From the NCBI GenBank assembly GCA_051294905.1, contig CM119384.1, forward strand, positions 3,038,001 through 3,102,000: DNA of 64,000 nt. Reading direction: 5' to 3'. Within the stretch, counting starts at the first letter, position 1. Each line of letters begins with the position of its first letter. Made by a program: the position numbers and the translations under genes. The notes beneath the pieces were generated by a model, which saw only the letters and a list, made by a program, of their open reading frames with translations, was not told the origin of the DNA and searched no databases. Origin of the DNA: Botryllus schlosseri. Its lineage: Eukaryota. Shown here piece by piece: positions 12,125-62,136 of this stretch.

Positions 12125-15100
12125 TCACTTTGACTTCCTCGACTTGGATTTGCTTCCTGGGGATTTCGCTTTTATTATTGGAACTTTGTGCTTTACTGCA
12201 GTCTCCTTCATAGCCCCGGACATAGATTGAAGCTTAACACCCGATGCAGCTTGAGGCTTGCTGGCATCACCCGAAACAGCTTGTTGCTTGACAACCCCCG
12301 ATGCATCTTTAGGCTTGTCAGCCCTCGATACAGCTTGTGGCTTGACAACCCCCGATGTGGCTTGAGGCTTGTCAGCCCTCGATAAAACCTGGGGCTTGAC
12401 ATCCCTCCATACAATTTTAGGCTTGGCCGCCCTCGATGCTGCTTGCGGCTTCAGATCTCTCGATACAGGTTGAGACTTTACAGCCCCCAATGCAGCCTGG
12501 GTCTTGACATTCCTCGATACAGTTCGGGGTTTGACTGTCCCCGATGCTGTTTTGGGGTCCATGGCGCCAGACATAACTTGGGGCCTTATGGGGGGCGAAA
12601 TAGTTTCACAAAGACCACCTCGAAGCGATTCCCAGTCCGCTTCCCCTCTACGTGCACAATTTATGTTGGAATCGACCATGGCTATCAGGTATGCCAGTTC
12701 TGTATCGTCGAAATAGTCGGTGGCGTCCGCCATAGCCGCTTTGGCTTCGACCATGTCAGCGATGCCTTCCTCAACGTCGCCCAATTTAGCACGAAGAACG
12801 CCCTTCCACAATAACAGCCTCCCGTAGATTTTATACTTGGACGGGTTTGAAAGGTCACGCTTTATATCGATGATGGCTAGCTCAGCCTCCTGCAAGGCGC
12901 GCTCGTAAGTTTCCTCGACGCAGTAATTGGTGATCATCCCGTGATCGAAGCAAGCTTGGTCCACCGCATTCGTTTCGTTGTAAGACACCAGTTTTTTCTG
13001 CAGGTTGGAGCGCACACTGTTAAAGAATGTGATTAAAGGAAATCGTCGATCGAAATTATGTTTGATGACGAAGTAACCAATGCCGTCTACGCCGACAGTG
13101 AAGTCCCGAAGCTCTCTCACGTAGTGTTCCGCGCTCATGCCTTCGTTTTCGTACTTCTTCAGGAGGCCGCACAGCAGCAGAACGCCTCCTACACACCGCT
13201 GCGAGTGGACGTTGTGCCCGTGTCTCGGGAAGAAAAGGCTGGCCCAACGCTGTATCCGTTCGTTCGACAAATCGGAGTCGATCATATACATGTAAAGCGC
13301 CGCCATGTCGTCCATCCTATCGTTTCGTGTCTCGTCGCTTAGCAGCACAGAGCATTCCGCCATGAGTAGCAGGTCGTGGAGGTCGTCCTCACCTTGAATG
13401 CGGGACACTTTCTTTAGACACTTTCTCGCCGCCTCGTACTCGCCGCCCATGTAGTGGACCAGAGCCTCGCCTGGATGAAAACGAGATCGCTTGAACATTT
13501 TAGATATGCTGAAGAAATGGAAAGGGATGGCGTGTTTCGCACACATTGATCTCGCTGGAAAATCGGCGCAGTCATCTCCCGCCAGAAATTGGGCACATTG
13601 GGCCAAAACATAGTGTCCTATATGGTGTGGACACAGCGATACTGAACGGCTTACTACATTTGGGTTACGTCATACTTGCTATCTGACCAAAGGCAGCTTC
13701 ACGGCCCTTTTTAACCGGCTTGCCGAGCGCTAAATTCAATAAAACTGGTATCAATGGAAAGCTGCTGCTGTACTGATTATTAGCGATGGTGTGAACGTAA
13801 GGTTCACGTTCGCGTTCTGTGTGTGAACCTCAGTAATTTAGAGGTTCACGTTCACAAACGAACCTTGGTAGGTTCTGCACTGTGAACCTTTTTCATTTAT
13901 TACAATTTTCACTTCATTATAACACCTTATTTGGTGGAAATTTGTTGCACTCTATGCATAGCGCTGTTAGCATAAAAAATCAACATTAAACGAGCATGCA
14001 CCTTGACAATTTCAAAGATTTACTGGATTTCTTACAAAAGTTTGCTCGAAATATCCACTTCTCCGTTTGAGTATATTAATGACTCTTAGTTGTGAGCTTG
14101 ACCCGCAATCACTATCATACAACATCAATAGCGAAATACACTACATATGCGTAGTCAGCTAATGATGCTTATTCAACCAATCAATGGAATTGATATCGTT
14201 GTCTGATGTAAAAAATCTAGCATGCGTAAGGGGTCAATCTTGATTTCATATGTTTATTGTATCATAAAAACCAAATTCGTGCGATTGGGGTGTTGGCTTG
14301 TTGCTGTATAACTTATTGTTAATGGGTTAATGTCGGTAGCAAGTACAGACACCCTTGCAAGTCGTCATTGAAATGGTTGGCGAAGCAACGGAAGATATTG
14401 ATTTTATGGGATTATTATGTCATTTGATTGCCCAGTTGATACATTTGGCGACGTTTAAAACGCCAATATGTACTTCAGCATTGTGGCATTAAGGTGCCCG
14501 AGTCGCCGCTAGGTATCGTGTACTACTGTTCATTAATATGGGCTTTCAATTCACTGAAATGTAAGGTTGGAATTAACAATATGACGTCACGTGACGTCAT
14601 GAGGTTCACGTTCGCGTTCACACAGAACCTTTCAAAAAGGTTCGCGTTCACACGAACCTGAACCTTTCAGAGGTTCGCACCATCCCTACTGATTATGATA
14701 CTATACATTCTATTTCGCCCAAAATCAACCTTAAAATTTGCATTGTGATCTAGTTTTGGGATTGTGACGGAACTATTCTGTCTGGTAAAACGAGAGTGAA
14801 GCTAAGAAGAAAGAGCCAGACAGTACTGTTGCGTAGCAGGAAAAGAAATGACGTAGTTTATTTTTTGTCCTTGATGTTTTTTGCGGCATATACACCGACT
14901 CATGATACACATACACACGATCTGTGGATATGCATACCATGAGTGCATGATGTGCATATGCCGCTGGACAAGGAAGTGCAGATATAGCCTTTACGGCTTT
15001 CTAAGTCATGCACCACCCCTCCATGCTATCCTAGTAATGCATGAGCGCCAAGCAGGGAAGCCATGGATACCAGTGTTACTAATCAGGTTTTTGGTCTGAC

Positions 15101-18100
15101 CCGGCCGGGAATCGGACCCACGACCTACTATTTCAAGAAGCCGGACGCTTAACCATTACGCTATCTTGTCGGATGACAATGCCAACTAGATCACGATGCA
15201 AATTTCGAGGCTGATTTTGGCGGGTTCCCGGACAATGAACAGAATAAAATTTATATTTTCGTAATCAGTTCAGCAGCAGCTTTCCATTGATATCTGTTTC
15301 ATCGAATTTTGCGCTCGGCAAGCCGGTTAAAAATGGCCGCAAAGTTGCCTTTGGTCAAATGGAAAATCTGACGTAACCGAAATGCAGCGAGCCGTTCAAT
15401 GTCGCCGTGTCCGCACCTTATAGGACACTATGACCCGAATGGGCAATTACTTTATGTCCGCTAACTACATTATTATAACCAGACAACTTTGATGACATGA
15501 TGCATTTTCCTCTCGCATGGGTCAATATCTCACACTCTTAGCGAAAAGATTACGTATTCGCACCCTTGTACCACCTGTAATATACGGGTGTAAATATACA
15601 CCTGTGGTACAGTAGACCAGAACATACCTTCGACTATAGTTACACCACGGTAAATATCAATTACAACATTCGAAACCAAATGGTGCTTACAGGAAGTACA
15701 CCTACGAACGCTTATACTCTCTGCCAAGTACAACTTTATTCCAATTTTATAGATGCCATTTCCTGGTGCCAGACCTGAATCGCTAAAATAGTAAATCACA
15801 TTTTCACGGTGTTTCTGGAATGTCAGTCTGCAAGGTCGGTTCACTTTCAATCGGATAATTTCATCGGGTCAAAGAAGGCCTACTTAGAGAAATAGAATAG
15901 CCTTATAGATGCTGCGGCCCGCGGCGTCGCTAAAACATGGACATTGACCCGGAAGCACATTAAAGTTATGATTCCTTGTTTATAGTGTATGCCCGGCCTC
16001 GACATCCTGCAGAGCCGAAGCGCTACGGTACTCTGTGCCGAAATGCGTTAAAGCTCTTGCTCAATATTTACCAAAACAAGGACCGAACTATAAATTGTGT
16101 CAGTCTAACTACAGCTACCTCTGTAAACTGCGATAGCTACCTCTGTAAACTGCGATGAGATCTTGCTGTGCTTTTTGGGATCTCGTGCGCTTTTTCCTGG
16201 TCGCTTCGTGCGATTCTGTAACAACGTTGTAGTAATGAATACTTGATTGGATCGTGATAGCTCCGCAGCTCTTTTGCCATAAGAGATACCAGCCTGACAG
16301 CACTTAGGAATCGCTATACTTGGTTACTTACCGTCAGGCTCTGGACTAGCTGGATTAGCGCTTTGCTTCGGTACTTTGAATTGGCGCGTTAGAAATTTTG
16401 TCATCTCCTCCGGTATACTTTCAACGCTGTTTCTGTAAAATGTTATGCGTACGTTCGTAGTGGTACATGAAAATAACAATTATTCGGCCTGTCGACAGCC
16501 GGATCTATCAAACGCTGGTTTGATGATCACTATATTGATTCTCGTATATAAATCGATAGAAGCAGACGCAAAACAACCGAATTATAGTCAAATTTGAGCT
16601 CAAAATTTCAACACTCCGTTACAACAGGCATTACAAACATATAAATGCAGATGGAAAAGGACTCACGCGCTTTCCGTAGACGGAGTACCAGTATCGGTGG
16701 CTGAGGATAACTCTTCGACTTCGAGGTCACCTAAAAGTCACCGAATCGGAATCATGCATTCGTTTTCATTTCACGAAAATATAGAGAGGAGTCGAAACGA
16801 TCTACTGAAGTCGGTCAAACAAACACGCATCTTGACCACCTTCGATAGTAATAAACATCAAATATGTTAAGGCGTATGCATGCAAAATAAATACAAGAGC
16901 ACGACTGCACGAAATTGACATGTCACAAACGTCATCTTGATCAGATAATGCAGCAGAGGTTGCATTCATATTTTTCAGCAGGGTAGACGCAATACATACT
17001 ATGAAAGCCAGTGAAATGATGTAATGCCGACTTGATTACTGCTCAAATCGCAGCTTGTGTGCCAACTAATAGCGATAATAATATTAGCTCACAAGAATCG
17101 CGAAGCCGTAGAATTTTGGTGTCAGTTTTGTGGAGCAGATTCCAATCCAAGCTAGACTTCCATAGCATCATAGCAGTGTTGGGATGACTCGAGTCATGAC
17201 TTGACTCGAGTCAGACTCGAGTCAACATTTTCGTATGACTTGACTTGACTCGAGTCACTTTGCAAAAATGACTTGACTTGACTTGACTCGGCGCTTCAGA
17301 AATGTCAATTGACTCGTGACTCGGAGCAAAATTTACGAGTCAATTTCAAGTCATCAATTAAACGGTGTCGATTAAATCGTCCTTTTTTTATGCATGTTCG
17401 GATTGTTCGTGATACGCCGATGTCACTGGTGAGGGCAACCAGTCATTTACTGATTGAAAATTGACCGCAAACGAAACGATCACAACTTCCGTTGTTGTCG
17501 TAGCAGTAGTAGACTAACCCAATAGCAACGTATCTTTGTTTCTCAGTGCTCAGTACGCAGTGCTCCCCTTTACCAACACTCTGGTATAATTTAAATCGAA
17601 CGAACATCGTTTATGTGTTTATATTCTCGCAGGTGTGTAGATGGGTAGTGTATGCTACTGTAACATATCAATTTGTTACGACTTCGAGGCTTCGTACTCG
17701 ATCCTCTATTTTGGTTGATAATAACATACTGTAACATGTATCTATACGCAGCAGTTACTCAAGTATTTTACTAGCAGCTCTAGTGTGCGTGAGCGATAAA
17801 ACGCCTTTTTGCATGTATATTTAACTTTATATTTGTAATTTGATGCAACAAAAATGTCCAATTAATCTGTCTTTCACTCTGCTAGCAAAATTTAATCACT
17901 TTGCATTATCACTCATACTTCGAAAATCCAATTTGACTGGAATCGTGACTTGACTCGTGACTTGACTTGACTCGACTTGACTCGAGTCACCTCCAAAAAA
18001 CGAGTGACTTGACTTGACTCGAGTCATCTTCGAAAATCGATTGACTTGACTTGACTCGAGTCAAAATGTGCAATGACTCGAGATGACTCGTGACTCGAAG

Positions 18101-18872
18101 GTAGTGACTTGATCCCAACACTGCATCATAGTATTAGTATCAATTTATTTGTAATTTCATCATTTCAGAACGCCACAAGACTGCGATATAATGCAAAAAA
18201 GGAACGTGCCGAAACGACTTAGAGTAGTCCTTGAAATCAGACACACGCCTGGGCCTAGGTGATGTAAAGAAGAGGCATGTACACTAAATAAAAAGAGAAA
18301 TAATATCATTGAAGGACAATCCACCAAATCACGACGAACACCATAAGCATGATATAGGTACTTACTATCCGTCCGGTTAGGTGGCAACACCAGACGCATC
18401 GGAGATGGAATAATGAACGAGACCGATCTCTTCATTGCTGGCCTTCAAAAATGGTAATTTCTTATGTAGTATTGGAAAGACATGGTGAATCATATCGCAC
18501 GGATAGTAACCAGTACCCTAAGAGCATCGACAGTTACACAACAATTTGAAATATGAACGTTAACGTCTACGCGTGCTCTAGATCAGTGGTTCTAAACCAT
18601 GGTTCCCACGAGAAAATCGTGCTCTCAAAGATGTTTTTCTTTCAAAACTGTTTTCGATGCTCAGCTTATTTTTGCACCGGTAAGTTGAGTATTATACTCG
18701 TAATGGGATAGATTTTTTGTAACTAAGCCACTGTTTCCAACCATAGACAGTTTTACCACTAGAAGCCGCTGTTCGATAAATACTGTCCGAAGCGGTGGAG
18801 ATACAATATAGGTTTGTCCACGATTTCCGTCACTTTTCTGAATTCTCACCTTTCCTCACCGCCGGAGGCCAT
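12125..18872 (-). CDS. Paralogue 1 of an unrecognised TPR-like protein family (about 561 aa predicted)
   Basis: Coding exons 18872-18850 (MASGGEE), 18442-18366 (..FIIPSPMRLVLPP..), 16730-16667, 16432-16332 (..PEEMTKFLTRQ..), 16215-16141 (..DLIAVYR) and 13470-12125. All AG/GT, phases 2,1,2,1,1, total 1686 nt with no internal stop. AATAAA at 12077-12082. Confidence 0.85.
12190..12570 (-). repeat. Coding minisatellite, 27-bp unit (9-aa KPQAVSRAD-like repeat)
   Basis: About 14 degenerate units in the paralogue 1 tail. Confidence 0.85.
13781..14688 (+). mobile_element. hAT MITE, TAGGGATGGTG family
   Basis: TIR tagcgatggtg / caccatcccta, gtgaac/gttcac subterminal repeats, perfect TSD ctgattat. 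Confidence 0.9.
14885..15175 (-). mobile_element. tRNA-derived SINE (MetaSINE-like core)
   Basis: Reverse strand: A-box taatggttaag, B-box ggtccgattccc, then ggccgggtcagaccaaaa...ggta...ccctgcttggcgctca, resembling the metazoan MetaSINE central domain (from memory). Homologous to 39268-39530. Confidence 0.7.
17174..18123 (+). mobile_element. hAT MITE with GACTC subterminal repeats
   Basis: TIR cagtgttggga / tcccaacactg, perfect TSD catcatag. Confidence 0.9.
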
Positions 18873-25325: not shown

Positions 25326-25654
25326 GCCTTATCAAAGATGTAGAATTAAGGTCTTGTTGACCCCCTGAATGATTCGCGGACCCCCGGTAGAGGACCACCG
25401 GCTTAGCAGCTTTCTCGGGCATGTCTTAGGTCGCTAGCGTATACCATGTTGAGTGACGGGCTAACTGCTGACCATTACAACGTAACAAATACACCCCCCT
25501 CATAAATCAATATATATACCGCAAATTCATCTTTATTTTACGTATTCCAGGAATGCAACCAAAACGTAACACTCTATTCCGATGATTGGCAGTCACTTCG
25601 ACTTCTCGACTTGGATTTGCTTCCAAGGGATATCACTTTCGCCGCATCTTTTTG

Positions 25655-28600
25655 TTAGACAGCTTTCGACTTCGTAGTTTCCGACGCATCTTCCGGCTCG
25701 ACAGCCCCTGATACAGTTTCAGGCTTCTCAGCCCCCGATACAACTGGAGGCTCGGCAGTCCCCGATACAGATTGAGCCTTGTCAGCCCCCGATACAGCTT
25801 GGGGGCCAACATCGACAAGAACGGCTTGAGGGCTCACGTCGGCCGAAGCATCGTGACCTATTTCAACTCGAACCGTTTCCAACTTGGCTCTTGCTTCAAG
25901 TGCAGATTTCATATTGGACTTGAACGTATGGATCAGGTATGCCAGATCCGTGTCGTCAAAATAATCAGTGGCGTCATCCATCGCCGTTCTGGCTTTCTCC
26001 AAGTCGACGATGCCCGGTTCAACTTCGCCAAGTTTAACACGCAGAACGCCCTGCCACATCAACAGCCGTGCGTAGATTTTAAATTCGGAAGGCTTGGTCA
26101 GGCGGCGCTCTATATGGTACACGGCCAAGACGGTCTTCTGCAACGCGCTTTTATAATCTTTCTGTACGCAGTAATCGGAGATTATCCCGTGATCGAAGCA
26201 GGCTTGGTCCACCGCATTATCTCCGTTGTACGATTTCAGTTTTTTACGCAGATCGGTGCGCACTCCGCAAAAGAATTTGATCAAAGGCGATCGCCTCTGG
26301 AAGTTACATCTAATAACGTGATAACCCACGATGTCAAGGCCCACCATGAAACCCCGAAGCTCGTCCACGTAGACGTCGCGGTCCATGCCTTCGTGTTCGT
26401 TTCTTTTCATGAGACCGCACAGCAACAGAACGCCCCCCACGCAGCGAAGCGAGTCGACGTTGTACCCGGGCCTCGGAAAGTACAGACTGGCCCAACTCTT
26501 TATACGATGAATTGGTATGTTTGTGTCACGAATTTTTCTGTGAAGGTTCCCCACGCCTTCCCGCGTACCATCGCTCAGCATCACGGAGCACTCCGACATC
26601 AGTAGCAGATCGTGAATGTCCTCTTTACCCCGAAGCGAGAAAACCTTGTTCAAATTCTCTCTCGCCCCCTCGAAGTCACCGGCCATGTATTGGATCGCAG
26701 CCTCGCCTATGCAGATAAGAAAATATCACATAAAACTATAGAATAAGTATTACAGCTACACAGTTTTGTTTCAAATATAGATTGGAATTTGAATCATCAA
26801 ACTCGCAAAAGGAATTTTAATCAATTTCAGCTCTTTTGAACTCATGATTCATACTTATAAGCACGAGAATCGCTGTAGCATTATCAGGAAAAACAGGGAT
26901 TGGATAAAATATTAAATTCGAGGATAGAAACATTTCACAAATCAGATTCGAATTGGAATTAGAGCAAAGCAGCATTTCACAAATTAGATCATAATTAGAT
27001 TACCGACCTCATGGTATAATTAATCTAAGTCGGGGGTCCAATGGCGTCGTTGGCCTATTCTCTGGGGTCGCGGGGACGAAAATTAAATACCAATGAATAT
27101 TGGAAGAACGTCAATTAAGCGTATGCTTTCGACTTCTCATTTCTGAATATTTTAGTTCTTTATTTTTCAAAGGAGGAAAAACTAATACGAATCCGGCAAA
27201 CAAAGAATGAGGTCAGTCGAAGCGTCATTTAAAGCGCCACCTACTATAACGCATGCTGGTCGGTGGTCATTTATCAAGATCAAAGCGTCGGGAGCATAGA
27301 AACCAACAGGACGGTTACGTTTCCTTCCGGGAAAATTTCCAAGTGATTGGCAGTAGTATGTGTTAACAATAAAATAAATAGACAGGACACACGTAATAGT
27401 CACGTAAATAAACACGTGGTAATCAGCACGCCAAATTGAGAGGCGGGCTCGCGAAACATTTGCAAATCGAAATTTGGCGTCGCGATAATAAAGTCTGGCA
27501 GCCTTTGATCTAAGTAGACAACTAGAATTATGGTTGTCCGACTCCGGCTGGATAAGCACGGAGATCAGTTGAACGTATCGGACAAGAAGAAGACATATAA
27601 ACGGCTGGCGTACATGTTAGATTTTAAAGCGAATTACTTTTATCGTCATATTTACAATGTTACCCTGGTATGTTTGCTACTAAGATATAAGTTTTCTTCG
27701 ATCAACATTATTATAACATGGCAATGTAGAGGAAATGTGAGCGTTATCATCATACTAGCCGCATCGATCATCATTATCCGATACGGGATGCTTTGCCTGC
27801 GATTTTTTGTATCATCATTGCTGACGTATATTCGTCATATAGTGATATATCTCGGTTGGGTGAAAATGAAGTTTCAAGTCTTCCGCTCGTCCCTTTCCTA
27901 CATATTACAACCTTGACACTCCTCACAGCCGAAGCGTTATACTGCTCGGTGTCGAAATGCGTCCGGGTACGGGTTTGCGTAAATATCCGGTTTAATATTC
28001 TCCAAACTATGAGTGATAAATTTCTGAAGCTTGCGCCTACCTCTGTAAACCGAGATGCAATCCAGCGCTGTATCAGTTATGTGTCGCATCGTGATGCTCG
28101 TAGAATGTGACGCTTGAACGTGCGATTCTGTAGAAACGTTGCAGTGAATATAGTTGATAGGATCAGGCCTGATATCACAGGGTTGTAACCAAGTCACAAG
28201 GTTCCGAGTCACAAGTCGAATCTCCCTTTTATAGTTTTGACTCGAGCCAAGTCGAGTCATTTTCAATTCACCATCGAGTCAATTCGGAGTTCAAGTCGTC
28301 GTGCAGAGGGTCGAGTCCGATTTATATCGGGTTATTACCATATTTTGGAATCCTCAAAGTAGAATACTTTTTACAAATCATAAAAGTCAGTTTACTGAAA
28401 TTGAAATATTTATTGGCAATTTTATAGTGATGACTAAAAAAATTGTCATCTTTCCGAATCATCTCCGAAACCCCCCGCTCTTTACCGTTACTGCTGGCGT
28501 GTTGCCTACAAAATGGTCGATTTTAAAGGAGGACAAATCCTCCTATAAAGGACGTATGGTAACCCTATAGTCGTTTTGTTGACTGTTCGGTTTCGAGTTA

Positions 28601-38323: not shown

Positions 38324-38349
38324 CTCTGACTATCGCTCGGTCATACAAA

Positions 38350-42803: not shown

Positions 42804-45800
42804 TCACTTGGACTTCCTCGACTTGGATTTGCTCCTTGGGGATTTCGCTTTCGCTGAAGCTTTGTGCTCGACTGCCGTCGACTTCCCAGCTCCCGGTGCT
42901 GCTGGTTCAACAGCCCCTGATGCTTCGCGAGGCTTGGCAGCTCCCGACATTGCTTGGGGTTTCACAGCGTCATACACAACTCGGCGCCTCACGGGGGAGG
43001 AAGCAGCGTGATACATGTCAGCTTGGAGGGTTTTCAAGTTCGCTTTCCCTTTACGTGCATATTTTATATTCGTATCGACCAGGCTCATCAGGTATTCCAT
43101 GTCACTGTCGTCGAAATAATCGGTGGCGTGCGCCATAGCCGATTTGGCCTTCTCCATGTCGACGATGCCCTCATCAACCTCGCCCTGTGTAACACGCAGG
43201 ATGCCCCGCCACATCAACAGTCTCGCGTAGATTTTATACTTTGAAGGATTGGCCCGGTTACGTTCTATATCTTTGATGGCCCATATGGCCTCATCCAACG
43301 CACGCGGGTAGTCTTCCTGCACGCAATGATTGGTGATCACACCATGATCTAAGCAAGCTTGGTCCACCGCGTCGAGTTTGTTGTATTCCACCAGTTTACT
43401 GCGCAAATCGGTGCGCACGTCAGAAAAGAATTTTTCCAGTTCAAATCGTCTATGGAAATTACGTTTGATCACGTAGTGAACGACGCCGTCCAGGCCCACC
43501 AAAAAATCCCGAAGCTCATTCACGTAATCTACGCACAGTATGCCTTCGCTTTCGTATTTTTTCATGAGACCGCAAAGTACCAGTACGCCCCCTATGGAAC
43601 GGAGAGAGTCGACGTTGTGTCCTTGTCTCGGGAAGAAACGGCCGGCCCAACGCTTTATTCGGTCGTTGGACACGTTGGATGCGACGAGTTCGACTTGGAA
43701 ATCGACCCAGTAGTCCCGCGAGTCTTCCCACAGCAATACGGTGCACTCCGCCATTAGTAGGAGGTCGTGGAGATCATAGGTAGCCATAAGTCGGGCAGCT
43801 TTTTTCAAACTCTTTCTCGCCGCCTCGTACTCACCCCCCATGTATTGGACAAGGGCCTCGCCTGGATAAAAACGGAGATCGGAGGTGAAATTATCGAATC
43901 TGGTTTTCCTCTCCTGATGAGAGTCCATTGAAAAGCTTCGAGTGGAATGAATTTGGCAATATGAGTATAATTTTTGATGACTATGGTGAACTGGCGGTAG
44001 GCATGTTTACTGTTTATTTGTACTTTCCAAGTTGTTATTAGAGTCTGTGCTTTCCAAGAGGGTATTCGCGGGTAAACGCGTTCGCCCTCTTCGTATTCTT
44101 TATTTTCTTCTCAAAGGCTTGCGTCAGGAGAGACAAGATAAGGTGCGAGGGAAACTAAGAAGCTATAAGGTCAAGAGCGCGACCAGTGGCACTAAGAAAC
44201 GACACATGCTACTATAATACAATCTAAGATCAATGGCGGGAGCCAGTAAATATCACAATAACACAAATTTTCGTTCGCTCGGAGGTTTTACGATCAATCG
44301 TGGCGACACAATTTTACTATTATTACTCGAATTGAAAAACGAGACAATTCCATATGCGGCACGGAAGGATCTAGTATACTCCCTTAACTTAACTCACTGG
44401 AGAGAAAGTGGGCAGCGCATCACATATTTCGCACGTAATTACCAGTGTTGGGATCAAGCCACTACCTTAGAGTCGTGGCACATTTGGACTCGAATCACGT
44501 CAAGTCACTCGAATTTCGTGATTGAAGTGCATATTGAGTCGCAGTATCTTTTCTGAGTCAAGTAACCAATCCCCAGAACCCCCATGAGCCAGTGGGCTTT
44601 TTGTCGCTACATATCAGCTATACCTATCTCATGTACTGTTTGGTAAGTCACCGTATTTCGCCTAAACGCGCCAAGCGCGACAAATTTATATAATTCATGT
44701 TTGAATCGGTCAATAAGGTCGATGTGGTATGTTGGAAAATGTAGGACCCCTAAATAATAATTAAACATCTTCGTGCGGAATCGTTGTTATATTGACCTCT
44801 TTACATGATGCTATTTCCTGACCTCCTATATCTGCTATGTCAGAAGATATGGAAATCGTAAAAACGTACCAAACTAAAAGACGCACATGATTTCATATTG
44901 GTATTTCTTTACTGGCAAATATTTTTTTCCTTGCGGGATGGCATTTGTCCTGTAGGGTTAAGGTCGCCAGGACAGGAACATTCGACGCCAGCCATTGAGG
45001 CGCCTATGGACAATTAAACATATATGTATGTATATATATCGAAATTTTCGGTCTTCTCGCTGCTGATCGTTCTGGCACACTTCTTGGAGTCGCATGTTAC
45101 ATGGCCTGTAACTTCATGATATGTTTTGGTGCGTCGTGGCGCAGTAATGGCCGACGCCGAAGTCTCCCATTTCCATAAATCATGCGTATTTTTGTCGGGT
45201 GACGAGGACCCCAACATCAAGATACATGAAAATAATAAATCGCACGCAGCGCGAAAATTTTTTGAAAAAGTCGCATGAATTTCTAAAAAATTACTCTATC
45301 ATTCATGTTAATCCACGAAATAATTTTGGGCTTCCTTCGATTTCGGGCCCCCCACCACCAATTGGGGGGTTTGGGTGCGGTAGTTACGGTCCCGACTCCA
45401 ATATAGCCGTTAACGCGCCATCGCCCCCTTCGTTGTATTCGCCCCCTATCGTCCCTTCGTCCGTTTTCGCCCCCCCTATCGCCCCATTCGTTATTTTCGC
45501 CCCCCCTAGACCGCCAAATCGCCCACGTTGGGAACCACTAGTCTACACTGATCAGATAAGTGACTTGACACTCAAGAATTTTGCTTCGAGTCACGGTTCA
45601 ATCCAGACTTATGAAAACCGAGTGGAGTCGAGCCATTTTTGAAAGGTGACTCCGAGTCACGTCAAATCATCTGAAAAAGTTAACTAGAGTCGTCCAAACA
45701 CTGGTAATCACTGAAGTAGGATCAGGCGGAGGTCGCAACCGGGAAAGTGACGCAAGAGTGAAGAAATGTGTATCAGAAAGTTGCAAGGGTTGAGGAGCGA

Positions 45801-48800: not shown

Positions 48801-51800
48801 AAATAGTCATGTAACTTTTACATTCTCAGAATCTAAAATTTTTAAACTCCCTTGGTAGTTTACGGAGTGGAAGTTACGATAAGCGATATGCAAGTTGTAA
48901 CGCGACAGCGGTCGAATATCATTCGTTTTTATGATATCTAGATTTGATTTGATTTGATTTGAACATTCATTATTAAAATTATTTCCCTTCATATACGTGT
49001 AGCGCTACTTTGTTGTCTTCAAATAGATGTCGACCGGGGTGGGTGAGTGATAAATCGCAATTTGAGATATGAACATAGACAGTGAGCGATTTTCTGTGGT
49101 ATGCAATCAATTTGACAAATCGAAAGTGGTAACATTGTCATGATTCTGGCAAACTGTCAAAGTATGGAAAAAGTATGGAAGTATGGAAATAACATTCCAT
49201 ACCATACTTGTGAAATTTCCATACCATACCATACTTGCACTCTTCCATATTCCATACCGAAATTTCGTTCCATACCATACCATACCATACCATACCATAC
49301 CATGCCCTGGTTCTGGTGCATGGCTACAATACAAACTACGAAATTATCAGGCCACGATATCCCATATCTATATCTCCCACATACTAGGATATGCCACCCA
49401 ATTTTCATCTTTTTTCTATTTTATTTTATCTTCTGTTAGTTTTAAGCTAGTGGTTCATCATGACCATCTTACATGTTGGACGGGTTTAGGCCTACGTGTT
49501 CAAGGTCTAAGCGGGTTGTTTGATTGAATGACCGCTACAAGTCGTGTTACTCGTGTCGACCCATTCATGCTTTTCGCAATATTGTGATCATTATGAAATT
49601 AATAATGAGTAAGCCATAAACGTCATCGCGAACGCTTCGCCCATCTAGTTCGGCCAAGTCACGGTCGGATTACGCCTGGTCTGGTCATGGAAACACGGCC
49701 GACATGTAGGCTACAACGCATGCGACATGGTTTTTCGGCCGTCCTTCGGCCGTGCATGGAAACGAAGTAAATGTCAGACTTCTAAATTTCATAGGTCTGA
49801 ACCTACTTCTGTAAATTGCGATGAGGTCTAGCTCCTTGTCAGATAAAATTCGCGTCGAAATTCGCGTCGTCTTGTTCGCTAACGATGGCGGGTCAACATG
49901 CGTTTCTGTAAAAACGTTATGGTGAATGTACGCGACTGTGTCGTAGCCATGTGTGACAGTATCACGGCGTCCGCCAGACCAGATGCTAGCCCAGCATCAT
50001 ACCTCTGAATCGCTATACTGACCTTGAGGTTCCGAAGCTGGAACCACGCTTCGTTCCGGTACTTTCGGTGCTTTCGGTACTTTCGGTGCTTTCGGTACCG
50101 GTACTTTCGGTTGACGCGTTAGAAATTTTGTCATCTCCGGGAGTATTTCAACGTCATTCCTGTAAAGTGGGATTCGCGAGTATCCGTCTGAGTGACACAA
50201 TATTTGACTCATCTCTTCAAGTAAATAACGATCATTCAGGTTTGTCGACAGTCGAATCTACAAACGCTGGTTTGATGAGCATCGGTCGCCCTATACAAAT
50301 CGAGCAAAACAGACGAGGAACCGAGTCATATTAAAACGCAAGATATCAAAACCCCTCGTTAAAATAGGTACTATACCGGTGGTTCGTAACCATTTTTAAC
50401 TCATCTCCCCCTTATCGATCTTGACATGTATTTATCGCTTCCCTTTCCACGTGTATTTTGTACGGGAGTCCGGATAATTAAGTATATCAGTACATCAACA
50501 ATTTCGCCCCCTTCGTACGTTTTCGATTCCCTGTTTCTGAACATCGTCCACTATGAGGAAAGGTATCGTCCACTAGTAACGGAAACTTATGAAAATCTGA
50601 ACTATATTGTTACTAATAGATTTCTTCACCAATATGTTTATTAAGGTGTGTAAATAACATGTGTTAAAATGTTGAAGTTCAACTCTTGTGAGAAACCCCA
50701 AAAAAGTTGTTAAATTTGACGAATTGAAAAATAAAATATAAAAAAATCTTTATAGCCTGTAGGTAACTTAGGACGGATTTGATAATGGTTTTACATGATT
50801 CTCAATTGATTGTTAACACTTAAATTTCACTACAAGCTCTGCTTAGTGAAGAAAGCCACACCCACTTTTATGTTCATGCGCAAAATAGCCTTTATTTCGC
50901 ATAGATATGTTCACCGAAGAGGTAGCCTATTTCTCATGCACAATATCAGACATTTCAACAGGCATTGGCTATGCCTTCTTCGGACTCAACATCACCGTGA
51001 CTGCAATTTTTGCGTTATAAGGCCTTTACATAGTCCACAGGCCGAAATGCATGTCTCCTCATTCTTCTTGCTGCTGTATATTCGGCCGTTGCAATCTTTA
51101 TGACAACCACATCTTGTAAACTACAATAGCTCATCAGGAGCCAACGCCTCCAGTATTGGAACTTGCTCATATCCCTGCACGTTTATTTTCCATCCATAAT
51201 CGCTAGGTTTCGGAGACACGTTCTGTATAAGAATCCAATCCCGGGTCTGCACGTACTCGCGGAGTGAACGTTGCGCACTGTGCAGCTGCACCCTCTGTCA
51301 GAGATAGTGTCTCTGGTTTGATCACTCCTGCAGCAGTCTTCCTTGAGAACATCTTGTATCTTGTAACCATCAAAGACCACATTGACATTCTGAAAGCAAC
51401 TGCCTAGATACTGCAGGTAGCTTGGGTAATTGTAGACGTTGTTCCACCTCACCATGTACAGAAGCCATCCATCATCAATTATGAGGGTACAGATTGGTTG
51501 GCTAGTCAAGTCCAGTGGATCAGTTCAAGTCAAGTGGATCAGTTAAGGCCTACATGGTTGTATTGAAAATTCTGCCTTGGTAGCCTTGTTCATCTTCTGA
51601 TCTTTGTTGCTGAACAGGGACATCGGGAAAGGAGTGAACTCGTACTGTAAGATTGTCGCAACATCCATATCCCGTTGGGTGAAAATGATCAGTCGGTTGA
51701 ACAACTTCAATGAGTTAATGTGAATGTTCTACCAGTAAACCTTAGGACATTTTCTTTGCGATGACAGGACATTCACCTTTGACATGACAACCACGGTCAA

Positions 51801-54800: not shown

Positions 54801-57800
54801 AACGAGCATGCGCCTTGACAACATTAAAAGTTTTACTTGCTTTTTGGTTGCAAAATATTTCTCGAAATATCCAGCTTTCCGTTTGTGAATATTTAGTGAC
54901 TCTCTGCTGTGAACTTGACCCGAAATCACACAACATCACGAGCGAAATATACGTAGTCAGCGAATGATGCTTATTCAACCAATCAATGACATTGATATCG
55001 TTTTCTGATGTAAAAAATCGAGCGGGCGTACGGGGTCAATCTTGACTTCATATCCTTACTGTATCATTGAAACCAAATCCGTGCGATTAAGGTGCTGGCT
55101 ACTGCTATATAACTTGTTGTTTACGGTATCGGTAGCGAGTATAGAAACCCGTTTTACACTCTGCTCAATATCAATGTAGCAATACTCCGACTCCGAACAC
55201 ATTGCCCGGTCTGTCAAAGACCGTTAAGGCGTAAGCTTATATTCCCTGGTAAGTCCTGGTCGAAATTGTTGGCAAAGCGACGGAATGTATTGATTTTATG
55301 AGATTATTATATGCCTTCATAGCCGAGATTGATACATTGAGCGACGTTTAAAACGCCAATATGTACTTCAGCAATGTGACATTATGTGACCCGAGTCTTC
55401 GCTAGGTATCGTGTACATTAATATAGGCCAGAGGTCTCAAACTCAAATGTGGTCGCGGGCCAATTTTCCAGTTTTTGACGACGCCGCGGGCCGCAGCATC
55501 GATAAGGCTATTCCATGTCTTTCCAAGTAGGCCTTAGTTGACGGGATGAAGTTGTGCTATTAAAAGTGAGCTGATACAGCAGACTGACATTCAACACGCA
55601 TCGTAAAAATGTGATTTATTCTTGTATCAATTTAGGCCTGGCATGAAAAAATCATTACATTTATAACTATTTTAATAGAAATGTTGTTGTACTTGATATA
55701 TATTAATTATAAGATATAGACGCCATGTGAGCGGAAAAATATATAATGTTATCATAAAAGCTATCACGTTATAATTTTGCAGCTACTATGAATATTGTGA
55801 ATTTAACAGATTGATAATAATAGAGATTGATCTGATATCACAGCATTTGGGGTTCAGCAGTGTAGCCCAATCCAGGATTTGGGTATACTCCTGATAAGTG
55901 GGTTATTAAGCTCATGGTCAATTACCTTCGAATAGAGCAGAAAAATAACAATATAAATATAATAATGAATGTGTCATAGGTATAGAAATGTCGAAATGCC
56001 GAACAACCCATTGTTGTTATATCTACGAGCGTACCACTACGGCACTCGTACCTTTAAGTAGCCTAATAACATGATTTAGCGATCCAAGATGTAACGAATA
56101 GATTGCCAATGGTTGCCAAAACTACTTGCTTAGTAAGCGAAATACCATGCAGCGACCTTCTGGTCTATTACTATTCCCATGACTCCGTGTCCACTCGGGT
56201 CATTTTCATTTAACCATTGAGTCAGCCCGAGTCGGAGTAATTCTAATAAAGGTCGCGTCCAAGTCCAACTCACAAATTTCAGTCACGCATCGTTTAAGCA
56301 TAGTGCTGTAAACGACTATCGTCTAAGGGTCAGGGTTTATCATCATGAATTGGAAATGTGGCGAAATAGTGAAAATTCTACTGCAGGGACGCGGATAGTG
56401 AAGTTTAATGAATAGTTCCAGGCTTTCGGAGCAATAGAGCGAATTTCCACTTTAAAACTTGAAAAGATATATGTGCCACTTATATATTGTAAAATAATTG
56501 AAAATCTAAAATGTCGTCACGGGCCGCACAAAATGATCTGGCGGGCTGCATGCGGCCCGTGGGCCGCGTGTTTGAGACCTCTGATATAGGCTATCACTTC
56601 ATTGAAGGATAGGGTTGGAATTAGCAATATGACGTCACGAGGTTCACGTTCGTGTTCACACAGAACCTTTCAAAAAGGTTCGCGTTCACACGAACCCGAA
56701 CCTTTCAGAGGTTCACACCATCCCTACTAGCGACGACTGGGGTCACATAATGCCATAATGCTGAAGTACATTTTGGCGATTTAAACGTCGCTATATGTAC
56801 CAACTGGGGCAATCAGATGATATAATACTCCCATAAAATCAATATCATCCGTGGCTTTGCCAATAATTTTGAAGAGGTGTTGCCAGGGAATATAAACTTA
56901 CGCCTTAACGGTCTTGACCAGACCAGGCAATGTATTCGTGTATGAGTATTGCTACATTGGTATTGGGCAGAGTGTAATACAGGTTGTTATACTTGCTAAC
57001 GATATTAGGCTACCCCAAAAGTTATACAGCTGTAGCCAACACCTCGATCGCACGTATCTGGTTTTAATGATACAGTAAACATATGAAGTGAAGATAGACC
57101 CCGTACGCTAGCTAGATTTGTCACATCAAAAAACGATATCAATCTCATTGATTGGTTGAATCGCTCTCTACATGTTATGTATGTCGCTCGTGATGTTATG
57201 TGATTGCGGGTCAGCTCACAGCAGAGAGTCACTATATATTCACAAACGGAAAGTTGGATATTTAGAGCAAAATTTTTGTAACAAAGCAAGTAAAATCTTT
57301 GAAATTGTCAAAGTGGATGCTCGTTTTGAGTTGTTTTTTTTATGCTGCCGGCGTCATTCATAGGGTGGCCCGCAGTTGAAATGCAATAAATTCGAACCAA
57401 AGATGTCATCATGAAGTGAAAATTGTAATATATGAAAAAGGTTCACAGTGCAGAACCTACCAAGGTTCTGTTGTGAACCCGAACCTTCAAATTCCCGAGG
57501 TTCACACACAGAACGCGAACGTGAACCTCGCGTTCACACCATCCCTAATATTTATATACAGAGAAAATGAAAACGTCCTCACCCGCTTTCCGTGCAACTG
57601 CTTTCGGTGTCGGTTGCGGCTGCGGCTGTGGGTAACTCTTCGGTATTGGCGACATCTAAAGTCCCCGAATCACAATCATTCATTTGTTATCATTTCATCA
57701 ACTACGTAAAGATAGAAACGAGTCGGAACAACCTACTAAAGTCGTTCAAACAAACACGCACCTTGATAAAATACGCACCTCGGATAATAATGAAAATTAG

Positions 57801-60800
57801 ACATTAAAAATAGACGGGCAAGCAGAATGGTACCTTCAAAATGATAACATAAAAGCGACGAAAATATAAACGCACGACTGCACGAGGTACGGACGAAGTC
57901 GATGATGGTAATACAATGCACTAGATCAGGGGTGGCCAGCAATCCGTGGTCCGGGAGTAATATTCGGAATTAGTTATATTGCAAGGCCAACAAAAATTTG
58001 ATTACAGCCTACTGCGACGTTTGGGATGTTGATGACTACAATATCAGTTCTGACGCATTGGCGTAGCCAGCGGCCAGCCACATTTTTCGTAGATCATCGC
58101 ATATTACAATAAGGTAGGTTCTAGGCAGAATTATTCAACTTGGAAGGTTTCTTCGCGCTATGCAATTTACTGCGTCTCGATCAATGATAAACGTTTGTCT
58201 GCCGAAACCTTCGATAATGATACGTCCAGGCGACGTATAGTACTGTCTAGGGATGGTGTGAACGTGAGGTTCACGTTCGCGTTCTGTGCGTGAACCTCAG
58301 ATATTTAGAGGTTCACGTTCACAAACGAACCTTGGTAGGTTCTGCACTGTGAACCTTTTTCATATATTACAATTTTCACTTCATTATAACATCTTCGGTT
58401 GAAATCAATTACATTTCTACTGCGGGACGCTCTATGCATGACGCTGGCAGCATAAAAACATCAACAGTAAACGAGCATGCACCTTAACCATCTCAAAAAT
58501 TTTACTTGCTTTTCTACAAACGTTTGCTCGTTTTATCCAGGTTTCGGTTTGTGAATATTTAGTGATTCTCTGCTGTGAGCTTGACCCTCAATCACGCATC
58601 AAGAACGAAATATACTACATGTAGCGTAAATAGTCAGCGAATGATGCTTATTCAAATATTCCACCAATCAACGAAATTGATGTCGTTGTCTGACGTAAAA
58701 ATCTAGCAGGCATACGGGGTCAATCTTAATTTCATATATTTATTGTATCATAAAAATCAAATGCAATTGGGGTGTTGGCTACTGCTGTATAACTTGTTGA
58801 TGGGGTAATATCGGTTGATGGGGTAATATCGGTAGCAACTAGCAAGCCTCTGCTCAATATCAACGTAGCAATACTCAGACGCCGAATACATTCTCCGGTG
58901 CGGCCTAGACCGTTAAGGCGTAAGCTTATATTCTCTTGCAAGTCCTCGTTGAAATTGTTGGGCAAAGCGACGGAAGATATTGATTTTCATGGGATGATTA
59001 TATCAATTGATTGCCCCAGTTGATACATCTGGCGGCGTTTAAAACGTCAATATGTACTTGAGCATGGTGGCATTATGTGGCCCGAGTCGTCGCTAGGTAT
59101 CGTGTACACTGTATGTACATCAATATAGGCTATCATTTCACTGAAATGTAGGGTTGTAATTAGCAATATGACGTCACATGACGTCATGAGGTTCACGTTC
59201 GGGTTCACACAGAACCTTTCATAAAGGTTCGCGTTCACACGAACCTGAACCTTTCAGAGGTTCACACCATCCCTAAACCGAGCCCAGCGACTCGCAATAT
59301 ATGTATGTAACAATATTACTGACCGAACTCACTTTATTAACCAATTTTCGCGCTTATTGTCGCGGCTAGGACATAACCGGGCGAATTTTCGTAGCATAAA
59401 CGTGTCCGATATTTATGCGTGGTCTTATTTTCACCGTTACCTAGTCCGGCTTTCTCCTGTCGGACGACTAAAAATGTCATCCACAATCAAGTGGCCAACG
59501 CAATGAATCGTAAAAGGCATTTGGCCCCTTCGGAAACCTTTTACTAGCACTTTGGCTAGCAAGGCCAATTATGGAAATTACCAGTAAACGCCAGCAAACA
59601 ATGAATTTTCGACAGGTTGGATATTTAGCTGGAATCGGGCGCGCTGATAAGTGTAAACCTTGTGCATCTTGTGAAAAAAATTCCAATATCGAGGAGTTTC
59701 AAAAATATTGCAATTATTTGGATGCTCATTTTATGAAAAGCCCAATAGTGGTCAAACCCAAAAAGTTGACATATTGTATACAGATGTAATCCAAAAAACA
59801 ATACTTCCGATAACGAAAATGGTTGTTTCTGAAAACAAGCCTATCCGAGAATAAAACCAATTCAGTACTTCACTGAACGCATTTGAGAAATATCCTAAAT
59901 ATGGAATCGCTGGCACTTCATGGGATTAAGTAAAATCCTAAATTTAGGATTGTTGGCAGTCAAAGTGCTAGGGAACCGGAAGTCGCCTTGATTTCTTCAT
60001 CATGTTGGCGCAATGTCCAATGCACACACCTGGCAGACTCTGATAGCCAGCGATATACCGAATTAATTCCAGTTCGAACTCCAGCATAGGTTGCCAACTT
60101 TAACGGATAGTTATAGGTCACATGAGTCGAGTAATTTCAGCGTCGACTCTATAAAGGTTCGGTTGGTAAGCAGCATCCGAGGGAGACCTCGATAGCACTT
60201 GTTTCATTGACGAGAATTATTAGCATTATATGAATTTACCTGCCGGACGGCTAGGACGCAGCACGAGGCGCATCGGCGAGGGAATAACGAACAGGGCGTC
60301 GCTTCTCTTTACTGGTCTACAAAAATGATAAATTTTAGTACTCTATATTGAAACGTGTCGCACGGGATGTCAATAAAATGAGGGCGTCGAAGAAACATGC
60401 TAAAAAATCTCGAGATATGCCCAAAACGCAGCACTATGATAATAGTCCAAGTAATACACAATGTAATCGGCTCAGAGGGGATTGGTGGCCACTGGTCAGT
60501 TACGAGTAATCGAGTAGGTTTTGTCTGCGTGCACTGCTTACTCAAGTGAGCATGGTTTGTAACTAGGCTACTTCCACTTCTGACCCTACTTAGCAAGCAA
60601 GACTACTTTGTATACCTTGCGTTTCGTGAAGTAGAAAATAGTCATTGTATATGCACGTATCGCTATTAGGGATGGTATGAATGTGAGGTTCACGTTCGCG
60701 TTCATCGTGTGTGAAGTTCAGAAAGTTAAAGGTCCAGGGTGACAAACGAACCTTAGGTTATGTACTGTAAACCTTTTCCATTCATTTCAATTTTTCACGT

Positions 60801-62136
60801 AATTATAATATATTTGGCTGTAATGCTTTGCATTTCACCTTTGAACCACTCTATGCAGGGCGCTGGCTGCATAAACACATCAGCACTAAACGAGCATGCA
60901 CCTTGCCAACCTTAAAAAAATATACTTGCTTCGTTATGAATGTTTGCTCGGAATATTCAGCTTTCCGTTTGTGAATTTTAGTGACTCTCTATATTGTGAG
61001 CTCGACCCACATCCACACAACATCAAAAACGAAATATACTACATGTAGGTATGGGTAGTCAGCGAATGATGCTTATTCAGCCAATTTTTGAATTTGATAC
61101 AAAGAATAAGTGTTGTCTAATGCAAAAAAAATCCAGCAGGCGTATGTGGGATCAATTTTGATTTGATATGTTTATTATATCATAAAATCCAAAGCTGGGC
61201 GATTGGGTTGCTGGCTACTGTATAGCTTGTTCATGGGGTAATATCGGCAGAAAGTATATCGGTAGCAAATATAGAAACCCGTTTTACACTCTGCTCAATG
61301 TCAATGTAGCAATATTCAGACGCCGAATACATTGTCCGGTCTGGCCTCGACCGTTATGGCGTAAGCTTATATTCCCTTGCAAATCCTCGTCGAAATTGCT
61401 AGCAAAGCGACGGAAGATATGATTTCATGGGGTTCTTATAGCATTTGATTGCTTCAGTTGATACATCCTGTACTTTAGCATTGTGGCATAACGTGGCATT
61501 AGTCGTCGCTGGGTATCATATGTACATCGTATAATGTACATTAATATACCACTTCATTGAAATGTACAGTTGGAATTAGCAGTATGACGTCACGTGACAC
61601 AAGGTTCACGTTCGCGCCCACACATCAGAACCTTTCGAAAAGGTTCGCGTCCACACGGACCATCCCTAACCGCTATTATGAGTGAAATTTTTATGTAAAC
61701 TGGGCGAGAGCGACCCTGTATCAAGATAACCGAGTATATACGCTTTGTACAGTTGTAGGCCTACCTATTTGTAGAGTCATTGATCATTTTGAGTTAGTCG
61801 AGAAGTTGCCCCCTCGATGTTCGAATGTGTAGCCACCTTGTTACATGCTGAAAGTGTGTACCCCATTCTTGAAACTAATTGCTCGAGCACTTTCCCTATC
61901 TTCATTTTCTTGTGATAGAAGTCCACATTTGGCTGAAATTGTTACTTCCAAATGATTAGAAATGCTGACTGCTTTGACCACCTCCGAACCTGATATACAT
62001 TTGATACGTCAAGTTTTGATTTGGTACTGCGGGACACTACTTCCATGGAGTTATCTTCACATCTGATATCGTTAAAAACAGATGTTTCAATTCCTATCGT
62101 TATTCTGAATTCTCACCTTCCTTGACTGGAGGCCAT
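42804..62136 (-). CDS. Paralogue 3 of the TPR-like family (about 487 aa predicted)
   Basis: Coding exons 62136-62117 (MASSQG), 60316-60240, 57655-57583, 50159-50023, 49905-49807 and 43861-42804; same phases; 1464 nt open. AATAAA at 42739-42744. Confidence 0.85.
44443..45703 (-). mobile_element. Degenerate GACTC-family hAT MITE with internal insertions
   Basis: Ends cagtgttggga / ccaaacactg; TSD gtaattac / gtaatcac. Confidence 0.7.
46923..49767. mobile_element. TIR element (TA-flanked, Tc1/mariner- or Harbinger-like) hosting a nested hAT
   Basis: Inverted repeats ct[gt]cgtttccatgcacggccga at both ends, each flanked by TA; superfamily ambiguous. Confidence 0.55.
47305..49309 (-). mobile_element. 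Decayed hAT transposon with GGTAT subterminal arrays
   Basis: TIR cagggcatggtatgg, perfect TSD gttctggt. Minus-strand relics IVGLVTD (about 48160) and PVHCSAHSVHCVL (about 47910) resemble the hAT catalytic D and CxxH motifs. Confidence 0.85.
50574..54366 (-). mobile_element. Decayed Academ (AcademX-like) DNA transposon
   Basis: Imperfect TIRs of about 250 bp beginning YAGTAA, 3-bp TSD cac. Broken minus-strand ORF: NWNGWM..IEFIPVIEGDPDD, PRLCGFHLLKSYIGSIG, AIRAHLLIDAA, MKRD..WF...PF, IDDGWLLYMVRW..VVFDGY (XPG/PIN-like) and CGCHKDCNGR..CISACGLCKG (Cys-rich finger). Confidence 0.8.
52574..52744. repeat. Small AT-rich hairpin element inside the Academ relic
   Basis: Arms of about 60 bp (52574-52634 / 52684-52744) are near-perfect inverted repeats around a tacttaa-repeat spacer. 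Confidence 0.8.
54580..56726 (+). mobile_element. TAGGGATGGTG-family hAT MITE, middle layer
   Basis: Perfect TSD ctagcgac; same family as its host, in opposite orientation. Confidence 0.9.
55429..56583. mobile_element. hAT MITE, innermost layer
   Basis: TIR cagaggtctcaaac, perfect TSD atataggc; a fragment of this family also lies reversed at about 15850-15990. Confidence 0.9.
58248..59275 (+). mobile_element. TAGGGATGGTG-family hAT MITE
   Basis: Both TIRs present and colinear with 13781-14688; no TSD recognisable. Confidence 0.85.
60667..61668 (+). mobile_element. TAGGGATGGTG-family hAT MITE
   Basis: Both TIRs present; TSD atcgctat / accgctat. Confidence 0.85.

Follow-up and report, generated by a model that had tools for sequence, protein, structure and literature searches.

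A stretch of 64,000 nucleotides of the Botryllus schlosseri genome (GenBank assembly GCA_051294905.1, contig CM119384.1, positions 3,038,001 to 3,102,000 of the forward strand), hereafter the window, carries three tandem genes on its minus strand. We denote them A (coding span 12125-18872), B (25655-37013) and C (42804-62136), in window coordinates. We consider it likely that the three are same-strand coding paralogues of a small, divergent tetratricopeptide repeat (TPR) family restricted to ascidians, and that each encodes a protein of three parts, namely an N-terminal region spliced from small exons, a TPR-like solenoid, and a tail of short repeat units.

The starting points for the gene models were three long minus-strand open reading frames (ORFs) at 12125-13606 (A), 25655-26686 (B) and 42804-43928 (C). 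The corresponding terminal exons are paralogous, A and C having 56% identity over 340 aa (E 3e-140) and B and C 51% over 325 aa (E 3e-115). Short motifs were found 5' of each large ORF, in the same order in all three genes, and alignment of the upstream regions that hold them showed conservation ending at AG and GT dinucleotides. Upstream exons were placed by motif search, paralogue alignment and splice-site scanning, with blastn and splice-site scanning used to find exon 3 of all three genes, and the models were then joined by script. A tblastn candidate for exon 3, pairing 17203-17352 of A with 33691-33824 of B, turned out to be a GACTCGAGTCAAGTCA-type repeat. The resulting spliced models are open from ATG to stop and encode 561 (A), 469 (B) and 487 aa (C). 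GT-AG borders are found at 15/15 introns, which leaves 30/30 splice-site dinucleotides intact, and the intron phases are 2,1,2,1,1 in each gene. The assembled models thus reproduce what the original prediction had drawn from the letters of the window, namely three minus-strand paralogues of six coding exons with these phases, an exon 2 of exactly 77 nt in each, and open frames throughout.

Exon 1 contributes 23 coding nt in A (18850..18872, reading ATG GCC TCC ... AG and then gtgaga), 23 in B (36991..37013) and 20 in C (62117..62136). The 77 nt of exon 2 lie at 18366..18442 in A, 36220..36296 in B and 60240..60316 in C, and encode ...KRSVSFIIPSPMRLVLPPNRTD, ...KKTDSFIIPSPMRLVLPPNNAD and ...KRSDALFVIPSPMRLVLRPSRPA, respectively. 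Exon 3 measures 64 nt in A (16667..16730, encoding an acidic, S/T-rich segment), 49 nt in B (34419..34467) and 73 nt in C (57583..57655). Exon 4 encodes NSVESIPEEMTKFLTRQ and a proline-rich stretch in A (16332..16432, 101 nt), NSVESLPEEMTKFLKRQ and a PA repeat in B (29616..29737, 122 nt), and NDVEILPEMTKFLTRQ and a KAPKVP repeat in C (50023..50159, 137 nt). The C-terminal residues encoded by exon 5 are ...QDLIAVYR in A (16141..16215, 75 nt, with a duplicated donor), ...LDCISVYR in B (28041..28127, 87 nt) and ...LDLIAIYR in C (49807..49905, 99 nt). Exon 6 of A, including the stop (12125..13470), encodes the TPR-like domain, about 14 units of 9 aa and a K/S-rich end, KSPGSKSKSRKSK; exon 6 of C, also including the stop (42804..43861), encodes the TPR-like domain, a short tail of such units and the end KSPRSKSKSRKSK. 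The gene sizes of 6.8 (A), 11.5 (B) and 19.4 kb (C) differ solely because of repeat-filled introns, which are 0.1-10 kb long and contain different repeats.

Exon 6 of gene B (25655..26706) ends in a premature TAA at 25655-25657, a position where C has a sense codon and A has no TAA. This codon lies about 75 nt upstream of the ancestral stop, and a 1-nt deletion is found downstream of it (about 25560-25655). The ancestral K/S-rich end can still be aligned 3' of the B stop but is out of frame because of this deletion; with the premature TAA, B has therefore lost the basic tail. In the alignment of the 3' flanks, the AATAAA hexamers of the three genes coincide: 42 nt 3' of the stop in A (12077..12082), 59 nt in C (42739..42744), and 117 nt after the premature TAA in B (25532..25537). 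A signal shortly after the ancestral stop position, also claimed at the outset, is therefore present in all three.

In order to assess constraint on the copies, we compared synonymous and nonsynonymous substitution rates (dS and dN). Between copies, dS in the domain is 0.78-0.83. The dN/dS ratio comes to 0.31-0.40 for the folded domain and 0.42-0.56 for the N-terminal exons; for the repetitive tail it is 0.5-1.0, approaching 1 only for the A-B pair and staying below 1 elsewhere. Synonymous codon differences are visible in the conserved motifs, and those in IPSPMRLVL among A, B and C are solely synonymous. The observation that MAS, IPSPMRLVL, EMTKFLxRQ and DxIxxYR are retained through synonymous change was borne out, all four being present in all three genes. 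Because three frames of 1.4-1.7 kb stay open at dS of about 0.8 with dN/dS below 1 nearly everywhere, a chance origin of the open frames is excluded on the strength of these comparisons. The copies are old yet constrained by purifying selection, and the evolutionary evidence favours function.

The fold of the C-terminal domain was predicted with AlphaFold2 for copy C, using a family alignment of eight sequences. The model is all-alpha, with a predicted local distance difference test score (pLDDT) of 84.4, a predicted template modelling score (pTM) of 0.78, 13 helices and a disordered tail; about six TPR-like hairpins are followed by a long capping helix of 36 residues (251-286). We performed five fold searches with it (Foldseek against the Protein Data Bank (PDB), against AlphaFold Database (AFDB) clusters and against AFDB Swiss-Prot; VIA-align against 48,161 PDB representatives; and an ESM-Atlas shape search). 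All five returned TPR solenoids and essentially nothing else, among them TSK/BRU1, NASP, kinesin light chain (KLC), LGN/Pins, subunits of the APC, CLU, TTC24 and TTC19. None of these matches scores strongly, and they lie close together: the best Foldseek E is 3.7e-3 in the PDB and 3.9e-4 in AFDB clusters, the template modelling (TM) score by query is at most about 0.5, and identities are 8-16%. In the model, then, the fold class is clearly a TPR-like solenoid, a chain of helix hairpins as expected of the TPR superfamily, and this agrees with the original description of the domain; because the scores are weak and near-tied, no specific relative can be assigned and none stands out. The clusters returned by a feature search of the ESM-Atlas were all TPR clusters of bacteria and archaea; as its recognition value did not reach the reliability mark, the search gives a weak lead to TPR.

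At the sequence level, Pfam TPR_2 matches A and C with 15-17 bits against a cut-off of 27, and a scan of B gave no hit, whereas 12/16 aligned family members match it (best 4.4e-11). The profile hidden Markov model (HMM) evidence for TPR (Pfam clan CL0020) is thus reached at the level of the family and falls below threshold for A, B and C singly. Searching PDB sequences with the family profile gave 96 matches at E<=1, the strongest being designed consensus TPR proteins (CTPR; PDB 1na0, 8bu0, 9qhb) at E 4e-49. Profile positions 214-237 (YGRLLxWxGxLxxxxGxVxEAI) match these repeatedly, and because the match reaches E 4e-49, one hairpin of the family is, by its sequence, a bona fide TPR; it is the only hairpin to match, the remaining helices of A, B and C being too diverged for the Pfam thresholds. 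This stretch is the same as the second TPR named in the original prediction (LLWKGVLRAKLGDVEEG...). The TPR that splicing of exon 5 to exon 6 was said to complete had a mixed outcome: the first helix is indeed incomplete when exon 5 is left out, but the Pfam match is sub-threshold.

Relatives of the family were sought with a HMMER profile search of 1.84 billion cluster representatives, which gave 17 hits at E<=1e-3, about ten of them true relatives; full-length members have E-values from 1e-137 to 6e-7. The full-length collinear hits form three groups: ORFs of a second species; four ORFs (P0005-P0008) from Logan or metagenome contigs, the P0007 contig being 24 kb long, gene-sparse and eukaryote-like; and uncharacterised annotated proteins of Styela clava and Clavelina lepadiformis. 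The Styela proteins are annotated as 'uncharacterized protein LOC...' and the Clavelina one carries the automatic name 'Tetratricopeptide repeat protein'. A second, word-indexed search with the family profile gave no further members, and a literature search on the ascidian LOC names and on ascidian TPR tandem families found nothing relevant. All members share the signatures GxYxEA, LLxxxEC, SKYKIYGxLL and AxDY (alignment A4), and A, B and C belong by these to an unnamed ascidian 'SKYKIYG' TPR family that is defined by this alignment. As regards the claim of an unrecognised lineage-specific family, the restriction to ascidians and the lack of a characterised member stand, whereas distant uncharacterised relatives had already been annotated in ascidians. 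The claim that no named orthologue is recognisable holds, since none that is characterised was found in the exhaustive profile, word-indexed or literature searches.

The annotated relatives (Styela clava LOC120332495, LOC120329724 and LOC120330244, with accessions XP_039255685, XP_039252436 and XP_039253055, and Clavelina CAK8689378) are collinear with A, B and C over the whole domain of about 270 aa, and have G-x-Y-x-E-A near its start, LLxxxEC, xSKYKIYGxLL, and A-x-DY near its end. A Styela clava protein of 430 aa has a low-complexity N-terminal extension, as do A, B and C. However, these proteins are only 16-20% identical to copy C, they have neither the IPSPMRLVL and EMTKFL exons nor the tail of 9-aa units and the K/S end, and their TPRs, unlike those of A, B and C, are canonical enough to pass the Pfam threshold.

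Closer relatives are P0001 and P0002, ORFs on contigs of another species (run SRR25569784) with 55-60% identity. In the maximum-likelihood tree, A, B and C form one clade within the family with 100/100 support; C pairs with P0001 (83/82) and B with P0002 (84/95), while P0001 and P0002 are not sisters. Distant paralogues also pair across species, L004 with P0004 and L006 with P0003. The other species thus appears from the tree to hold orthologues of B and C. Because of the cross-species pairs, the duplications are, as judged from sequence, older than the split from that species, with several copies kept on both sides.

The paralogue search of the 495-Mb assembly, in which the array lies at C14:3038001-3102000, found six family members in the Botryllus schlosseri genome (A, B, C, L004, L006 and L007) and one fragment. 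The distant paralogues have 23-28% identity to copy C: L004 (C14:18667673-18668464); L006 (C14:18689805-18690551), 22 kb from L004 on the opposite strand; and L007 (C14:21052727-21053565, also listed as L013 and L015), which was recovered as two overlapping match pieces, a split that suggests a frameshift or a small intron. The fragment, L005 (C9:17790228-17790467), has four stop codons. The exon-2 and exon-4 motifs are absent from L004, L006 and L007 and occur nowhere else in the genome beyond A, B and C, and so the N-terminal module is peculiar to the A/B/C clade.

The array could also consist of diverged members of a characterised TPR family, such as KLC, LGN/GPSM2-TTC24, NASP/TONSL or one resembling IFIT, whose function could then be transferred. 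The presence of TSK/BRU1, NASP, KLC, LGN/Pins and TTC24 among the top fold matches would be in line with this, as would the rank of KLC1, which among natural PDB sequences matches the profile best (E 1e-5 across some 100 of its positions), and the likeness of tandem, diverging TPR genes to IFIT loci. However, identity is 8-16% to every match, TM by query does not exceed 0.44, and no Foldseek E-value in the PDB is better than 3.7e-3. The matches are scattered over many unrelated TPR families with near-tied scores, the exhaustive profile search gave no full-length match to KLC, LGN/TTC24, NASP/TONSL or IFIT, and Pfam found no accessory domains of these families. We therefore hold membership of a characterised family to be highly improbable, the least probable of the alternatives weighed here.

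The individual comparisons are as follows. Kinesin light chain has six TPR_12-type repeats and an N-terminal heptad-repeat region that binds the kinesin heavy chain. Its TPR domain (PDB 3nf1, 5oj8, 3zfw) shares TPR_12-type hairpins with the family and, in KLC1/2, matches profile positions 143-240 at E 1e-5 to 1e-4, with VIA-align Z of 9.2-9.4. This match is local, at about 12% identity, and the exhaustive search has no KLC among its full-length hits; by composition, no heptad-repeat region was detected in the S/T/P-rich N-termini of A, B and C, which do not qualify as kinesin light chains. TONSL/TSK-BRU1 (7t7t) and NASP (7v6p, 7w5m) are among the top fold matches (Foldseek E 3.7e-3, TM by query 0.40; VIA-align Z 10.9-11.2) and, like the copy-C model, end in a long C-terminal helix. 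These scores lie within the stated background for helical repeats, and neither protein is among the best 60 of the 96 PDB sequence matches. NASP has an interrupted acidic TPR2 and TONSL has ankyrin/LRR parts. As far as these matches show, the similarity of A, B and C to them is structural only. TTC24 (mouse, human, scallop) and GPSM2/LGN recur among the AFDB matches with TM by query of 0.31-0.42, E 3e-3 to 2e-2 and 10-13% identity, with no support at the sequence level. IFIT genes are two-exon TPR genes in tandem arrays. The tandem layout is all that they have in common with A, B and C, which have six coding exons and not two, and IFITs are in none of the sequence or fold match lists.

In order to look for transcription, four bulk RNA sequencing (RNA-seq) runs of 2026 were mapped on 12950-18949, which covers gene A only. 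One of these, X20, has reads on unique sequence, at a depth of 0.3-2.7. They are confined to the bins that contain exon 6, exons 5/4/3, exon 2 and exon 1; nine bins of gene A free of both exons and repeats have zero reads, and the other covered bins are high-copy repeats. A signal at 17550-17949 seen in X20 only was considered as an extra exon of A and rejected, as it falls on a high-copy repeat in intron 2.

Several points weigh against three coding genes with TPR-like products. No splice junction of gene A reached the listing threshold of three reads in any of the four RNA-seq runs, and 3/4 runs have no reads on its exons. In a k-mer index, the runs matching exon 6 show identical shares (0.39 in six runs); because such shares resemble reduced-representation DNA, which these runs probably are rather than RNA, they were not counted as expression. 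The 22-nt duplication at the exon-5 donor of A, described below, could disturb splicing of this gene. As for the protein, the Pfam TPR matches of A, B and C themselves are sub-threshold, the best structural Z of 12.4 is inside the background that VIA-align states for helical repeats, and function is inferred from the fold class alone, by analogy.

Two alternatives draw on some of these points. In one, only the last exon is a gene, a single-exon ORF that starts at the internal methionine of ...YMGG..., and the upstream exons are conserved non-coding DNA or parts of something unrelated. The absence of a listed junction read for gene A would fit this model, and so would the calling of P0001 and P0002 from a methionine inside exon 6 and the lack of exon-2 and exon-4 motifs in L004, L006 and L007. 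Yet five upstream segments keep their order, splice sites, phases and open frames in 3/3 copies despite differing introns, the changes in IPSPMRLVL are solely synonymous, and the X20 reads include bins that hold exons 1-5. The domain itself also argues for the spliced form: without exon 5 its first TPR helix is incomplete, the exon-6 model of copy C opening with a helix of 6 residues and the TPR_2 match beginning at model position 8. Directly upstream of exon 6, all three genes have a pyrimidine tract and AG as acceptor, with stop codons further upstream in B. A single-exon gene is thus very improbable.

In the other, A, B and C are decaying or never-expressed unprocessed pseudogenes whose open frames are left over. 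We judge this improbable, as all frames and the 30 splice dinucleotides are intact at dS of about 0.8, dN/dS in the domain is 0.31-0.40, short motifs are retained through synonymous change, another species has intact orthologue-like ORFs, and poly(A) signals and 5' flanks are conserved. What speaks for decay is the near silence of gene A in the four RNA-seq runs, the dN/dS of about 1 in the A-B tail comparison, the loss of the ancestral C-terminus of B through its premature stop and downstream 1-nt deletion, the perfect 22-nt duplication that doubles the exon-5 donor of A, and the occurrence of broken family members elsewhere, namely L005 on C9 with its four stops and L007, which is split.

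Taking A, B and C as coding paralogues, their products can be described part by part. The N-terminal region of 113-135 aa comes from five small exons. Since it is rich in S, T, P and E and shows turnover of low-complexity repeats (the unstable proline repeats PAPAPA in B and KAPKVP in C), it is probably disordered. Three motifs in it are strictly conserved: basic-x3-F-[IV]-I-P-S-P-M-R-L-V-L, [EP]EMTKFLxRQ and DxIxxYR. The TPR-like solenoid of about 280 aa is encoded by the end of exon 5 and exon 6, with its first helix split by intron 5. The tail consists of 9-aa units (PQAxSGxVK), about 14 in A, 4 in B (25695-25801) and about 3 in C; in A they are encoded by a 27-nt DNA repeat within exon 6 (12236-12521), with 9.3 copies according to Tandem Repeats Finder. 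A basic, K/S-rich end follows the tail units in A, C, P0001 and P0002 and is absent from B.

TPR solenoids generally act as peptide-binding scaffolds, and from this general behaviour the solenoid here would be expected to do the same. The conserved N-terminal motifs could serve as docking or phosphorylation sites; S/T-P-x-K/R is the consensus of proline-directed kinases and SPMR fits it, which makes SPMR a candidate site. Complex prediction for the TPR domain of copy C and the exon-4 peptide of the same copy scored 0.06 against a mark of 0.34, which speaks neither for nor against docking within the molecule. The basic tail may add non-specific affinity for acidic partners, either nucleic acid or membrane, and B would have dispensed with it. 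As B has lost it, the tail is, by this comparison, not essential to the family. The nuclear or nucleic-acid-associated adaptor put forward in the original prediction has the K/S-rich tail as its basis, a feature lost in B, and is one possibility among several.

A more specific proposal is that A, B and C are phospho-regulated adaptors specific to the ascidian lineage, in which an old TPR scaffold has acquired a new N-terminal exon module that was recently elaborated and whose copies have subfunctionalised. The module would consist of a kinase-docking-like basic-x3-F-x-I directly followed by the S-P-M-R site, together with the EMTKFL motif; its splicing could be regulated through the conserved intronic blocks that adjoin exons 3 and 4; and subfunctionalisation would be seen in the numbers of tail units (about 14, 4 and 3) and in the loss of the basic end in B. 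We would give this proposal a slim chance only.

The surroundings of the exons also show conservation. The 5' flanks on the minus strand (18873-19010, 37014-37150 and 62137-62275) share 82% identity across about 170 nt, far more than the introns, which otherwise cannot be aligned. Each flank has a conserved AG 37-38 nt before the ATG, after a T-rich tract, and another directly before the ATG; in A the conserved leader between them is 38 nt long (18873-18910, minus strand). From its context, the conserved AG is probably an acceptor for spliced-leader trans-splicing, with the end of an intron in the 5' untranslated region as the alternative candidate. A further block upstream has 73% identity (A 19120-19330, B 38310-38520, C 62880-63090).

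Inside the genes, a block of about 55 nt (...ATCATCAAACCAGCGTTTGTAGATCCGACTGTCGACAAACC...) is kept in all three introns 3 (16470-16530, 29790-29850 and 50225-50285, minus strand). While intron 3 varies in length from 0.23 to 7.4 kb, the block stays within 60-115 nt of the exon-4 acceptor, on its upstream side. A coding role was rejected, as the block has stops or a frameshift in A and C. Folding of the three sequences gave a weak 5+3-bp hairpin of -5.9 kcal/mol (GUUUG/CAAAC, with G-U pairs in A), and the block may act in the regulation of splicing. Upstream of exon 3, A (16731-16835) and C (57656-57766) share a further conserved stretch of about 100 nt. In A, exon 5 has two 5' splice sites because of a perfect 22-nt tandem duplication, ATCGCAGTTTACAGAGGTAGCT x2 at 16113-16156; splicing from the second of them would lengthen the exon by 22 nt and change the reading frame. 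Since its copies are 100% identical, the duplication is presumably recent.

Intron 5 of A contains a very high-copy repeat of about 335 nt (14838-15172); a first look at the genome gave over 5,000 candidate copies, and those scored are mostly 94-96% identical. RNA-seq depth on it rises to about 4,000 in X20, and most reads continue into dissimilar sequence. Because the loose read ends contain a tRNA-like GGTTCGATTCCC motif, the repeat is probably a young, transcribed, tRNA-derived short interspersed nuclear element; ARAGORN and Rfam gave no match on the copy in the window. Intron 2 of A holds a dispersed high-copy repeat at 17480-17960 (also 17185-18063), for which there are 3,260 first-look candidates, the scored copies having 79-96% identity. 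Short tandem or palindromic repeats of the GACTCGAGTCAAGTCA type, also present in introns of B and C, border it. Minisatellites with units of 42-44 nt, of two related types (...TAGTTCTAGTTCTAGTTG... and ...AATTAGATTAGAATTAGAATTAGAG...), lie between genes and in intron 2 of B (22530-22691, 23678-23851, 35133-35335, 35829-35930 and 3989-4113). Rfam and tRNA scans of the whole window found nothing, and Pfam gave no match on ten other long ORFs in it.

As known here from sequence and predicted fold, the array has no bearing on any long-standing question. It is an ordinary kind of gene within the well-known class of TPR scaffolds, modestly surprising and worth annotating correctly. It enlarges the catalogue of genes restricted to tunicates by a small, delimited TPR family that is uncharacterised, and supplies curated exon coordinates for three members that automatic ORF callers truncate to the last exon. 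If the phospho-regulated adaptor proposal were true and the partners belonged to a process specific to tunicates, for instance colonial allorecognition or whole-body regeneration, the family would offer an entry point to it. At the level of the family, it shows a canonical repeat domain drifting below Pfam thresholds with its fold kept, and a scaffold protein being diversified by the gain of an exon module together with tandem duplication.

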